From contig NC_059433.1 of NCBI RefSeq assembly GCF_021028975.2, positions 67,208,001 to 67,272,000 of the forward strand: a stretch of DNA of 64,000 nt, written 5' to 3'. Below, one piece after another: positions 4,341 to 39,865 of this stretch (its first letter is position 1; every line of letters begins with the position of its first letter). Below the pieces are notes generated by a model, which had not been told where the DNA came from, did not search any database, and saw nothing but the letters and a program-made list of their open reading frames with translations. Position numbers and translations under genes: made by a program. This DNA comes from Sphaerodactylus townsendi (Eukaryota).

Positions 4341-4834
4341 CTAAAGAAACTGATTTTTGAAAGTGAATCTTGACTGGACTTCATTTAATATTAATTATTC
4401 ACTTTCTTCTCAGACTCAAGACAGGAAATGCCTATTTACCAGACCAATGCAATGCTTCTCATTTTGAAGGGTTCACAATGATTGTACAAATTGGCAGTTG
4501 AAGCAAGCTCTAGATCAAAGATCACACTCTAGATGGGAAGGAAACACGATTCTTTTATGGTATTAGAAGATACCAGATCTTTTTAAACCAGAAAGAACTA
4601 GAAGAACTAGTGGTAAAGGAAATAATTATTGGTTCACGCAGATGTACAGTGAGAAAGGATGACTTCTCACAAAAATATCCTTGAGAGGAAGAGATAGGAA
4701 GATGATCATATTTGTGCAGTCTGATAATTTGATAACCAGTCTTCTAAACTCACATGATGAAGCTACATGTGGATCAGGAAATGGAAGAGACTAGAAAATG
4801 CTAAGAATTTGAGAATGGGACTGTGCTATTCCTC

Positions 4835-4877
4835 TCCATTCCATTCCATTCCATTCCATTCCATTCCATTCCATTCC
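4835..4877 (+). repeat. (ATTCC)n microsatellite
   Basis: About 8 tandem units; unexpanded in the paralogous copies. Confidence 0.9.
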
Positions 4878-5062
4878 AGGGCTTGCAACACTTCAACAGA
4901 GCACATGACCTTGGGGTGGGAAAGAAGAGCGCCTCAGGCATTCTAAACCATTAATGGTCACCAATCCCCAAACTCTTCTCCCACTATATTTAGGATGTGT
5001 CCTAAGTCCCTCCCACCAAGGTCTTATGTGGCCACCACTGTCAATAGGCAATCATTGAAGTA

Positions 5063-5853
5063 CAGGCTTGGTCAATACCCTAGAAATTTGGTAAAATTTG
5101 GATTTGGATTTATTTGGGCATAACATTTTCTGTATGCCTGAAGAAGACAAATAACATATTCGGATATAATTGAATATTTAGGCATGCCCAAAAAATTTGG
5201 GTCCGTCTGATTTTGGGGGTATTTTGGGTGGTTTTTTGCATTTGAGCCTGCAGGGGGAGCATTTTTAAAGCCAGTGGCACCAACCTTTCAGGGTCAAAAT
5301 TCAGACACTGTCATAATGATGCCACCCAAGTTTGGTGAAGTGTGGTTCAGGGGGTCCAAAATTATGGACCCCCAAAGGAGGTGCACCTATCCCCCTTTGT
5401 TTCCAGTGGGAGCTAACTGGAGATGGGGACTACCCATTTGAGGGTCCTTAACTTTGGCCCCCTGAACCAAACTTCACCAAACTCAGGGGATATCATCAAG
5501 ACAATCTTCGGATGAGACCCTGAAAGTTTGGTGCCAATAGCTTTAGAAATGCATCCCTGACAGAAACCCCAAGAAATTGCCCAGATTCTCTGCTCTGCAG
5601 TGCCTTCATTCCATTGCAGACCACGACCCCCGGCCCCCAGAAGCAAAGTTCACCAAGACTGGTCCCTCAAATGGGTAGCCTCTTAACCCTAACTTTGTAA
5701 GCTGAAATGTGAAAAAAAACCCAAACCCCCAAAATACCTTGCATTGGCTTATTTGGGCAAGACATATTCAGGCTGATTTTGGCCAAAATATGCCTGAATT
5801 CGCCCAGTTTCGGGCCGAATCCGGTATCTGTTGCACCCGAATCTCCAAGCCTA
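5063..5853 (+). mobile_element. hAT-type non-autonomous element (truncated relative at ~8190-9594)
   Basis: TIR (c/t)aggcttgg...ccaagccta, perfect 8-bp TSD TTGAAGTA; empty site at ~11035. Confidence 0.8.
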
Positions 5854-5961
5854 TTGAAGTAAGGAGGTGATGACAAGGAATTGGGAGGTCCTGAAGGTAG
5901 ATGAACGGAGGGTGACTCGGCCAGGGGAAGGAGTGAGATTAGTATGGCCAAGGGAGGTTAC

Positions 5962-6050
5962 CTGGGGGGTCAATGTCCCACTGCATAGAAAATCACATCT
6001 TTGAATATCTCCTCAGGAACCTTTAACTCCCCCTCCTCTTTGCTTGCCAT
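5962..6050 (-). pseudogene. PAXIP1: PAXIP1 (PTIP) exon 1 duplicate, copy 1 (frameshifted)
   Basis: [25 protein letters not shown]/IDP then AG|GTAACC. Matches the remembered PAXIP1 N-terminus [21 protein letters not shown]. Confidence 0.8.
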
Positions 6051-37059: not shown

Positions 37060-38001
37060 TCAAGTGTGGTTACTCTCAGTACAGCCTTCTTCTTCCTTGA
37101 AAACTTTCTGGAGGATCATCTTCATGTTCTCCTTACATCTAGACTTCCTTTGTCTCCCAACCAGAGTATAGATAGCTGGGTTTACACTGCTATTTAGACA
37201 GGCTAATAGTATTACACTGTATAATATGTATTCTGTAAAATGACTGAAATAGAAAATGTCGAAATAGAAAAGGATGAACATGGTATTTAATGGGAAAGCA
37301 AAGAAAAGGAAGAAGACCAGGGTGAGCAAGATGACGGTCAAAAGTTTCCTCCTCTGATGCTGTCGTGCTTTTAAACGGAGTTTAATGAACAGGGCCACAG
37401 TGGTAACAGTCATGATTGGAAGGCAAAGCAGCCCATTCACAATATATTGGAAATGTACCTCAATCCCAAAATATCCAGTAAATCTGAGAGTGTAGGTAAC
37501 TGCAGTTAGCAGGAAGGAGAGGACCCAGATGAGTGCACAAACAACACTGGACAAACACGTTGGCTGGTGGCATTTATGCCAAAGTGGGAAGAAGACGGCC
37601 ACACACCTGTCAATGCTGATAGCAGTCAGTAGAAATTGACTAGTGCTGTACGTTAATAAGAACAGGGCCATGAACAATGCGTAAGTAATGCGAAAACCAT
37701 AATGAAATATCAACAAGAAATTAACAGCATGAAATGTAGCTGATACAAGGACCCCCAGATCAGCAACGGCCAAGTTCAGAATGTAGATGATAAAAGGATT
37801 CTTCTTAATGTGGAAGCCAAGAAGTCGGATGACAACTCCGTTCCCCACGGCTCCCGAAAGGCAGATGAGGACCAATATCAAGCGATAAAGAACGTTCACA
37901 TTATTCTGGCTTTCATAATCAAAGGTATTATCATATTCGATGCTGTCATTTGGGAAAGAAGTATTATCAAGGTCGTTATCGTATTCCAGGACAGTATCCA
38001 T
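37060..38001 (-). CDS. MAS-related GPCR, type A, copy A3, 313 aa
   Basis: Full 7TM ORF with YILNLAVAD, ISIDRC, LNSSVNPAIY. Acceptor at 38089-38090. Confidence 0.95.
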   Translation of the reverse strand: MDTVLEYDNDLDNTSFPNDSIEYDNTFDYESQNNVNVLYRLILVLICLSGAVGNGVVIRLLGFHIKKNPFIIYILNLAVADLGVLVSATFHAVNFLLIFHYGFRITYALFMALFLLTYSTSQFLLTAISIDRCVAVFFPLWHKCHQPTCLSSVVCALIWVLSFLLTAVTYTLRFTGYFGIEVHFQYIVNGLLCLPIMTVTTVALFIKLRLKARQHQRRKLLTVILLTLVFFLFFAFPLNTMFILFYFDIFYFSHFTEYILYSVILLACLNSSVNPAIYTLVGRQRKSRCKENMKMILQKVFKEEEGCTESNHT

Positions 38002-39029
38002 AACGGAAAGGATCGTCAGGCTGATATTGGTTATGATGGTTAGTTTCTCTTTTCGGGATTTTTATCTTGACGCCTCGCCTTTACGCTTCTGTCAGGAGAA
38101 AGAACAATGCTTGATGAAATTCTTGTTTTATTGTCTCTATGTTTATCTCTCCCTATTAAGAAAGGAATGGTCCCAAATGCCATATCTCTGGATTTGCTTT
38201 TTGAGTTTTGTTTAACCACCTGTTCAAGTGTGAGATGCTAACTGCAAATGGTGTGTGCTTTTTATTATTTTTTGGTATTGAAGCCTAATAAAATATATAT
38301 TTAAAAATGAAATTTTTGTTTTGGAAATGCATGGCTAAAGGTTTCAGTCTGGGGTTGCTGAAGTTTTAAAAACATAGTTCTTTATATATTTTGTACCTAA
38401 TTCCTTTTCCTAATCTGAGGACGGGCTTAGAAAGAGGTTGAATACTTTTCTGATTCATGCATGAAATAAAATCATGCTGCATATCATAGAAATCTCACAC
38501 TTTAGCTTTATGCACCCATTAATTTGACTATTCTATGTTATGTCAATTTTTTTTTGCCAAGCCTATTTGCCGAAGTGAATACCAAGAATGTAATGTTTAA
38601 AGTTTCATGGTTTTCTAACATCGTAAAATTCTCTGTAGGCTGCAATCAACATAACCACTATTAATCCCTTGAATGCTGTTTTTCTGTTTTGTTCTCCCCA
38701 TATTGTTAACTGAGCCAATGCATAATATTTGCCATTTCAATAAATAGTTTCCACAAACTGTGACGCTACATGACCACCGCATGCATTGGCTCATATATGC
38801 CTTAATGGTAAAAAATGATAAATATAGTCTGTGCAATAACTTGGCTATTACTGACCTATGAGTAAAGGTCACATCGTAACATTTACTAAACCAGCGATGG
38901 CGAACCTATGGCACGGGTGCCAGAGGTGGCACTCAGAGCCCTCTCTGTGGGCACACACAGAGTTCATCATGTGGGGGGGAAATCACCCCCCCCCCCACAT
39001 CTAGGTTGGCCTGTGCCACTGGGCTCGAT

Positions 39030-39119
39030 NNNNNNNNNNNNNNNNNNNNNNNNNNNNNNNNNNNNNNNNNNNNNNNNNNNNNNNNNNNNNNNNNNNNNNN
39101 NNNNNNNNNNNNNNNNNNN
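39030..39119. other. Assembly gap (others: 10209-10301, 47224-47416, 53275-53404, 63492-63627)
   Basis: Runs of N. Confidence 1.
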
Positions 39120-39259
39120 AAGATGGCTTGTTCGGCAGTGTGGTCCCCATTCACCGGATTAGGCTACTGTTAGGTGGTGAGGAGATGAAAGAGGGAGACT
39201 CAGTGAGAAGTCACAACCCTTGTTAAGGCAGAAGCTCTGGCTGTGGATTGGGCAAGATT

Positions 39260-39349
39260 ATGACAAGCAAAGAGGAGGGGGTGTTAAAGGTTCCTGAGGA
39301 GATGTTCAAAGATGCCAAGTTCTGTGCAGTAAGAGACAAAGACTCCCAG
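39260..39349 (+). pseudogene. PAXIP1: PAXIP1 exon 1 duplicate, copy 4 (ATG, frame and donor intact)
   Basis: [36 protein letters not shown], 30 codons, phase 0. Confidence 0.8.
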
Positions 39350-39865
39350 GTAACCTCCCTTGGCCTTACTAATCTTCCTCCTTCCCCTGGCCAAGTCACC
39401 CTCCGTTCTTCTACCTGCAGGACCTTCCAATTCCTTGTCATCACCTTCTTACTTCAATAATTGCCTATTGATAGTGGTGGCCACGATAGGCTTTGGGCAC
39501 ACAAGACCTTGATGGGACTTAGGACGCATGCTAAATATAGGAGGAGAAGAGTTTTGGAGTTGGTGACTATTAATGGTTTAGAATGCCTGATATGCCCCTC
39601 TTTCCCATCTCCCGGTCTTGTGCTCTGTTGAGGTGTTGCAAGCCCTGGAGCAGCCTGGAGTGGAATGGAGAGGAATAGGATAGAGCCCCACCACTTTGAA
39701 ACTGGGGGACATGTTATGCTCAGCCACGAGTACACCTGCCCCCCCTCCTTGATAGGTTTGGTCTTTCCCAAAGAGCCTGATTTGATTTCACACATTTGGA
39801 AAGGGAGATACAAATAATCAGGTAATGCAAATGTCTCCTATCTTCCAAGTAACTGTTTGAGCCAG

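Follow-up and report, generated by a model that had tools for sequence, protein, structure and literature searches.

Four copies of the 5' end of PAXIP1 (PTIP), which encodes a BRCT-repeat protein of the MLL3/4 complex and the DNA-damage response, lie inside a cluster of Mas-related G-protein coupled receptor (MRGPR) genes of the gecko Sphaerodactylus townsendi. The window analysed here is a stretch of 64,000 nucleotides (nt), CM037622.2:67,208,001-67,272,000 of assembly GCA_021028975.2. Its initial annotation raised the possibility that a borrowed PAXIP1 promoter and first exon drive the receptors, or once did. However, the fragment is probably a decayed passenger without promoter function today. 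As far as the sequence allows a judgement, promoter co-option appears on balance to be disfavoured. This is because the CpG island had decayed before the fragment was amplified, because PAXIP1 homology extends only about 200 nt upstream of the ATG, because three of the four copies no longer have an intact exon frame and because intact type A receptors with the same splice acceptor exist without the exon.

Identity and extent of the PAXIP1-derived piece

Four exon-like copies of 85-90 nt are present (Table 1), and their translation gives the peptides that had been reported. Their assignment to PAXIP1 has been corroborated. A profile of the four peptides was searched against 1.84 billion representative proteins and found 39 matches at E<=1e-3, of which the named ones are PAXIP1/PTIP N-termini. 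These include entries from Pavo (2.8e-8), Fundulus (9.1e-6) and Equus (2.3e-5), together with a Laticauda 'BRCT domain-containing protein'. The copies carry the N-terminal peptide KVPEEMF[KR][DE]VK[FY][FY]xVGDIDP[QK]. The top match (P0121, E 1.7e-15) is an open reading frame (ORF) on a 1474-nt Logan contig, L001 (sample SRR13336341), which is CpG-rich (GC 0.59, observed/expected CpG ratio, o/e, 0.73). Two other searches were uninformative. The 30-residue copy peptides have no PAXIP1 or BRCT match among solved structures (PDB) or in Pfam, for which they are too short. A length-filtered homologue search found nothing for the 66-residue read-through ORF of copy 4 and only P0001 (the hybrid receptor model described below) for residues 1-40 of P0001 itself, and says nothing about homologues of other lengths.

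The exon boundary points the same way. In spliced PAXIP1 entries DIDP[QK] is followed by VIQLLKAGKAKEV (VIQLLK), whereas the unspliced read-through ORFs of many vertebrates diverge exactly there. Therefore, the PAXIP1 exon ends at the donor kept in the copies. Alignment bears out the report that this donor survives throughout: all four copies end in CAG/GTAACC (slash, exon boundary), as does L001.

It is also clear that the piece was captured as genomic DNA, as had been proposed. Positions 539-1353 of L001 align to the copies, starting about 200 nt ahead of the ATG and running through the exon and then over about 520 nt of intron 1. In every copy the donor is followed by intron 1 sequence that corresponds to the L001 intron, so the exons are not joined and a processed retrocopy is ruled out. 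No later PAXIP1 exon was found in the window; tblastn with N-terminal fragments of 103-261 residues matches only up to about residue 31. Further upstream, L001 1-545 has no similarity to the flank of the copies, including the GGGGCGGGG stretch (z 0.3-0.5 against shuffles), and the GC-rich flank beyond about -200 nt is without homology to L001. Against contig L004, which holds the PAXIP1 5' end of a second, more distant species, the exon alone matches the copies. The copies thus share with PAXIP1 the exon 1 peptide, the exon-intron boundary, the 5' flank and the start of intron 1, but they hold only the first 30 codons, with no complete BRCT domain and no later exons. They are gene fragments and not paralogues, and none has the complete BRCT domains and intact frame of a functional PAXIP1 gene.

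Decay of the copies and its timing

The copies are 87-95% identical to one another over at least 700 nt, which is far beyond chance, and alignment of 600-nt flanks reveals upstream sequence, exon, donor and several hundred nt of downstream sequence common to all four. Both the ATG and the 90-nt length are retained only in copy 4. Copies 1 and 3 have lost the reading frame and copy 2 the start codon. In copy 1 the loss of 2 nt and the gain of a C lead to an in-exon stop; L001 matches this copy over 5863-6213, and beyond an insertion its intron part picks up again at 4845-5034. Copy 3 lacks 6 nt and has one additional C, and by paralogy with copy 2 its segment spans about 26855-27612. Could survival of the donor be a sign of selection? 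This idea was rejected: if each lineage changed by about 5%, chance alone would by our own estimate preserve an 8-nt motif in four copies about 1 time in 5.

The strongest clue to the order of events is the loss of CpGs. The homologous stretch of L001 (817 nt) has 62 CpGs and an o/e of 0.72. In contrast, each copy has 7-9 CpGs and an o/e of 0.16-0.28, so the earlier caution that the flank looked CpG-depleted was justified. Each copy retains just 1-3 of the parental CpGs, and TG or CA has replaced most of the others. None of the copies has the o/e well above background that distinguishes a CpG-island promoter. At 41 of the 55 parental CpG sites that can be aligned in copies 2-4, all three copies are in the same decayed state. 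This indicates that most of the decay preceded amplification.

Amplification with the receptor unit

Self-comparison of the window reveals two tandem units of about 16.2 kb, 10302-26518 and 26518-38714, which are 93-98% identical. The left end of the window holds a more degraded unit with copy 1 and receptor A1. The right side holds an inverted, plus-oriented unit consisting of copy 4, receptor A4 and then a type B receptor at 61.4-62.8 kb. Seven long ORFs in the window match Pfam 7tm_1 (E 1e-12 to 4e-22), which identifies them as rhodopsin-type G-protein coupled receptors (GPCRs), and the relatives of the receptor ORFs across squamates are named mas-related GPCR member H-like or proto-oncogene Mas-like, as expected of MRGPRs. 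Since the fragment lies inside the units and is shared together with their flanks, the proposal that it was co-amplified with the receptors stands. Between the tandem units (2 and 3) the block holding the fragment is 92-93% identical, compared with 98% for the adjoining 8 kb. This argues that the fragment is not specially conserved and was copied passively. The step from 93% to 98% falls at about 12.48/28.75 kb (10302-12489 versus 26518-28737, then 12473-20450 versus 28757-36729) and suggests gene conversion or a layered duplication history.

Two assembly gaps complicate the picture, and both sit at unit edges. The gap at 39030-39119 lies 140 nt upstream of the copy 4 ATG. To its left, 38710-39029 is 97% identical to 22856-23169, the region upstream of receptor A2, which makes the left side a continuation of the unit of receptor A3. 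To its right the sequence begins in mid-unit, inside the PAXIP1 5' flank, at a point matching 11379 in copy 2 and 27612 in copy 3. Because this gap falls where the inverted units join, the junction itself and the further 5' flank of copy 4 are unread in the assembly. The other gap (10209-10301) ends the unit of copy 2, and homology to unit 3 begins directly after it, at base 10302. Copy 2 had been placed about 9 kb from a receptor. This distance is unreliable, as the gap may hide a unit and the partner of copy 2 is unread.

Table 1. Features of the PAXIP1-derived piece, the type A receptors and the assembly gaps in the window
Feature	Coordinates	Strand	Remarks
PAXIP1 exon 1, copy 1	5962-6050	-	89 nt; ATG kept; frameshift and in-exon stop; donor CAG/GTAACC
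Copy 2 PAXIP1-derived segment	10685-11395	-	5' flank, exon 11143-11232 (ATG>ACG), start of intron 1; L001 539-1353 matches 11395-10685; unit ends at the assembly gap (10301)
Copy 3 PAXIP1-derived segment	27030-27505	-	Matched by L001; exon 27380-27464, 85 nt, frame lost
Copy 4 PAXIP1-derived segment	39120-39805	+	Exon 39260-39349, 90 nt, ATG intact; 5' side cut by gap 39030-39119
Type A MRGPR exon A1	933-1958	-	Coding sequence 933-1871 (P0004); acceptor before 1958; leader with in-frame stop
Type A MRGPR exon A2	21055-22071	-	Coding sequence 21055-21984 (P0003); acceptor before 22071; leader with in-frame stop
Type A MRGPR A3	37060-38001	-	Intact 313-residue ORF; common acceptor; no co-oriented PAXIP1 exon; upstream runs into gap at 39030
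Type A MRGPR exon A4	42450-43445	+	Acceptor ends at 42449; own ATG (MDT...) at 42537; 87-nt leader open; exon 2 of XP_048364523.1
Tandem unit pair	10302-38714	-	Minus-strand order: type A receptor, type B receptor, PAXIP1 fragment
Assembly gap	39030-39119		Junction of minus-oriented and plus-oriented units
Assembly gap	10209-10301		Downstream end of the unit of copy 2

Receptors with and without the exon

In three cases the exon is co-oriented with a type A receptor acceptor, and the reported spans proved correct: 4.0 kb for 5962>1958, 5.3 kb for 27380>22071 and 3.1 kb for 39349>42450. The sequence across each of these pairs is free of gaps. The three cases descend from one ancestral arrangement and thus count as one event, not three. 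The acceptor (TTCTTTCTCCTrACAG) is common to the five type A copies examined, which are the four in the window and P0002 (locus L003), 41 kb to the right. Both A3 and P0002 combine an intact ORF and this acceptor with the lack of a PAXIP1 exon within reach; in the 10 kb upstream of P0002 there is none. In-frame stops interrupt the leader between acceptor and ATG in A1, A2, A3 and the L003 copy; that of A4 alone is open. Paralogues of other geckos begin inside this leader (MTNISLTTLP...). Together with the common acceptor, these starts indicate that a native leader and upstream exon are an old feature of the family and that the receptors are independent of the PAXIP1 piece.

A further receptor unit lies on CM037622.2 about 50-70 kb to the right of the window. 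This unit (L006:12640-13258) keeps 0.6 kb of the post-exon sequence, 91% identical to 10308-10919, and is without the PAXIP1 exon and its 5' flank. Its NCBI model (P0027, 214 residues) has a different upstream exon, 8 kb away.

The hybrid RefSeq model

A hybrid of copy 4 and A4 is already a RefSeq model. When the A4 exon is extended to its acceptor, it is 100% identical to the last 331 residues of the 361-residue XP_048364523.1 (P0001), the S. townsendi 'mas-related G-protein coupled receptor member H-like' protein, and the first 30 residues of this protein are the copy 4 exon. What would the extension do? The 59 residues that it adds to the N-terminus carry the basic run SRRKSRKRK. By the positive-inside rule such a basic extension would be unfavourable at the extracellular end of a GPCR, and it is unlikely to be functional. 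The 59-residue extension in this entry is probably spurious.

No run on record as RNA contains 39120-43500; the six runs that do contain it look like DNA and fall under three organism codes. The 39349>42450 joint is absent among the joints listed from the contigs of four DNA runs. In the contigs of four runs the putative intron between copy 4 and A4 carries very high-copy repeats, and pieces of the PAXIP1-derived intron occur in two related organisms. For each of P0001-P0004 the genome assembly is the only source (contigs = 1).

The contigs also depart from the reference in this region. The reference base G at 42451, the second base past the acceptor, is A in every contig of runs X1, X3 and X4 (Ser>Asn in the A4 leader). 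The reference T at 39344 and at 39376 is C in all four runs, so these letters, specific to copy 4 in the reference, are unsupported by the contigs. The three mismatches may reflect collapsed paralogues or reference errors.

A co-opted promoter and first exon?

What if the piece does supply a transcription start and a mostly non-coding 5' exon that is spliced to the type A exon, with an N-terminal extension in the case of copy 4? This scenario is conceivable but rather unlikely. The exon is co-oriented 3-5 kb upstream of a conserved acceptor in three gap-free pairs; however, receptors without the exon are also intact and have kept the acceptor. The AAGATGGC motif of the parental 5' region, which we take to be YY1-like, survives, but no more than about 200 nt of parental upstream sequence was captured and its CpG island decayed before amplification. 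The donor is intact in all copies and XP_048364523.1 uses the 39349>42450 junction. Nevertheless, the fusion ORF is not conserved, given the leader stops in A1, A2, A3 and the L003 copy, the SRRKSRKRK run falls on the expected extracellular side, and no RNA run over the region was found. Cassettes of this type are able to drive downstream exons and to trap them, as the bat HelibatN3/NUBPL case establishes (PMC4778049).

Several observations weigh against treating the fragment as a mere passenger. The donor is kept in four of four copies and the ATG in three. Tissue-specific promoters do not need CpG islands. The breakpoint at -200 was measured against the PAXIP1 of a relative (L001), not that of S. 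townsendi itself. The NCBI model joins copy 4 to A4 in frame and at exactly the junction in question. A second model may also be informative: the type B model of unit 3 (334 residues) begins at 32591 on the minus strand and extends across copy 3 to a small terminal exon whose end is at 24580. It skips the ORF's own stop (31563) in favour of this odd terminal exon 7 kb downstream, with a tail ending in FGASCTIASALYFLVV and a stop. The odd exon may reflect introns seen in RNA-seq, and if so the region is transcribed. Finally, the RNA blank is weak evidence. MRGPRs are typically expressed in sensory ganglia. The public S. townsendi RNA-seq comes from whole head and embryo (10.1101/2021.08.13.456260), and such libraries sample sensory-ganglion receptors poorly.

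A mobile cassette or an assembly artefact?

Alternatively, the PAXIP1 5' fragment might be a dispersed module of sphaerodactylid geckos, either transposon-borne or repeatedly transduced, with the MRGPR copy as one insertion among others. We consider this unlikely, although there is a second sphaerodactylid chimera model built on a relic of PAXIP1 exon 1. The Euleptes europaea protein XP_056700730.1 (P0142, 'polyadenylate-binding protein 1-like') begins with a decayed PAXIP1-like exon, MVSKEEEEEIKVTEEMFKDDKFYAVGD, and continues as a PABPC-like protein. Contigs over the exon region are also deeper than their unique neighbours in four DNA runs. However, depth is not copy number, and single contigs over the exon reach only about 2-8x the single-copy depth; for this reason the reading of the exon-bin depth as about 100 copies was rejected. 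The surrounding block yields no transposon protein domain (ten ORFs against Pfam, no match), no terminal repeats or target duplications were identified there, and no literature on such a module was found. Because flanks unrelated to PAXIP1 are common to the four copies, segmental duplication accounts for their origin within the window. A bolder version is less probable still. It would make the module, with its residual promoter, ATG exon and strong inherited donor, an exon-trap cassette, dispersed and possibly mobilised by a transposon, that gave first exons to unrelated genes more than once, namely to type A MRGPRs in Sphaerodactylus and, in Euleptes, to a PABPC1-like gene. Reptiles would then have their own equivalent of the bat Helitron-NUBPL case, and the copy 4 fusion would be a transcribed, lineage-specific chimeric receptor gene.

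It is very doubtful that some copies, or their order and orientation, stem from a mis-assembled tandem array: both gaps do fall exactly at unit edges, and in two runs (same organism code as the best-matching runs) the only contigs listed over the copy 4 exon differ from the reference at five positions, including C at 39344 and 39376, which is the copy 2 state (copies 4 and 2 also differ at five positions in this span by our own count), but the copies differ by 5-13% and have distinct indels, the three exon-receptor pairs each lie in gap-free contigs and the order of the plus-oriented unit is consistent across three contigs.

A proposed history of the passenger fragment

For a decayed passenger the following course of events can be proposed. 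About 0.8 kb of genomic DNA from the 5' end of PAXIP1 would have been duplicated into the MRGPR cluster of a Sphaerodactylus ancestor. This piece would have comprised about 200 nt of 5' flank and 5' untranslated region, the first coding exon of 90 nt together with the donor, and 0.5 kb or more of intron 1. Its insertion site would have lain a few kb upstream of the exon of a type A receptor. Outside its native setting it would have been methylated in the germ line, and it lost nearly all of its CpGs. Only after this loss would the receptor unit have been amplified, by tandem duplication and one inversion, with the relic copied passively to four. Afterwards the exon would have drifted through loss of the ATG, frameshifts and deletions. 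The surviving donor presumably lets gene predictors, and possibly the spliceosome, join the relic to the receptor acceptor; the join is in frame in copy 4 alone.

Comparison with known systems

The closest parallel is found in vespertilionid bats, where HelibatN3 Helitrons carry the NUBPL promoter, first coding bases and splice donor (PMC4778049; PMC4224331). In both cases the 5' end of a housekeeping gene (upstream sequence, start codon and first-exon donor) was captured at the DNA level and exists in several copies. However, the NUBPL cassette splices to the next downstream acceptor to give chimeric transcripts or exonised 5' untranslated sequence, whereas the chimera of the gecko fragment is known as a computed model alone. 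The gecko fragment also differs in that no Helitron ends or transposon signature were found, its copies are few and spread within the window by segmental duplication, and its CpG island is decayed.

A second parallel is human CHRFAM7A, in which FAM7A exons are joined to CHRNA7 exons within a segmental duplication and which is transcribed and studied. Here too duplication placed the 5' exons of an unrelated gene upstream of receptor exons, and the hybrid is annotated. Unlike CHRFAM7A, the gecko hybrid is only a computational model (XP_048364523.1), and its hybrid frame exists in one of four copies.

Lineage-specific tandem expansions of Mas-related GPCRs are known in rodents and primates. Like the gecko cluster, these consist of genes with a single coding exon and a leader exon, in repeat-rich tandem units with both pseudogenes and intact copies. 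The gecko cluster differs in having two receptor types per unit and a foreign 5' fragment carried by the unit.

Other elements in the window

The PAXIP1-derived intron of copy 4 contains a 142-nt near-perfect palindrome (39868-40009; 71-nt arms, 96% complementary, no spacer). Contigs matching it have a summed depth of 10^6-10^7 in four runs of three organism codes, and it is a very abundant repeat of the genus that resembles a miniature inverted-repeat transposable element (MITE-like). Two further palindromes of this sort are found at 22715-22860 and 10064-10208. The tandem repeats in the neighbourhood of the copies show nothing unusual. Between copy 4 and A4, a 290-nt fragment (40824-41113, plus strand) is about 77% identical to type B coding sequence (15813-16091 and 32095-32373) and appears to be a receptor pseudogene remnant inside the putative intron. 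The type B model of unit 2 (304 residues, 15281-16312) seems to have an internal 117-nt intron despite an uninterrupted ORF. In two GC-rich (0.52-0.53) segments of the units, 18476-19564 and 34754-35843, long ORFs of up to 288 residues overlap one another on the two strands; two of these ORFs found no match in Pfam. Rfam at the gathering threshold found no family in the whole window.

Implications

Events of this kind are already known, and the gecko fragment adds one more. Should the piece prove active, a sensory receptor family would have been rewired by the promoter and first exon of a housekeeping gene, and a segmental duplication would have given rise to a chimeric GPCR gene; both would be clear cases among vertebrates. 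One lead is that PAXIP1 exon 1 fragments may be scattered in sphaerodactylid genomes. Users of RefSeq should be wary of the N-terminal extension of XP_048364523.1. For the receptor family itself, the order of capture, CpG decay and amplification provides a well-dated marker for the growth of the gecko MRGPR cluster.

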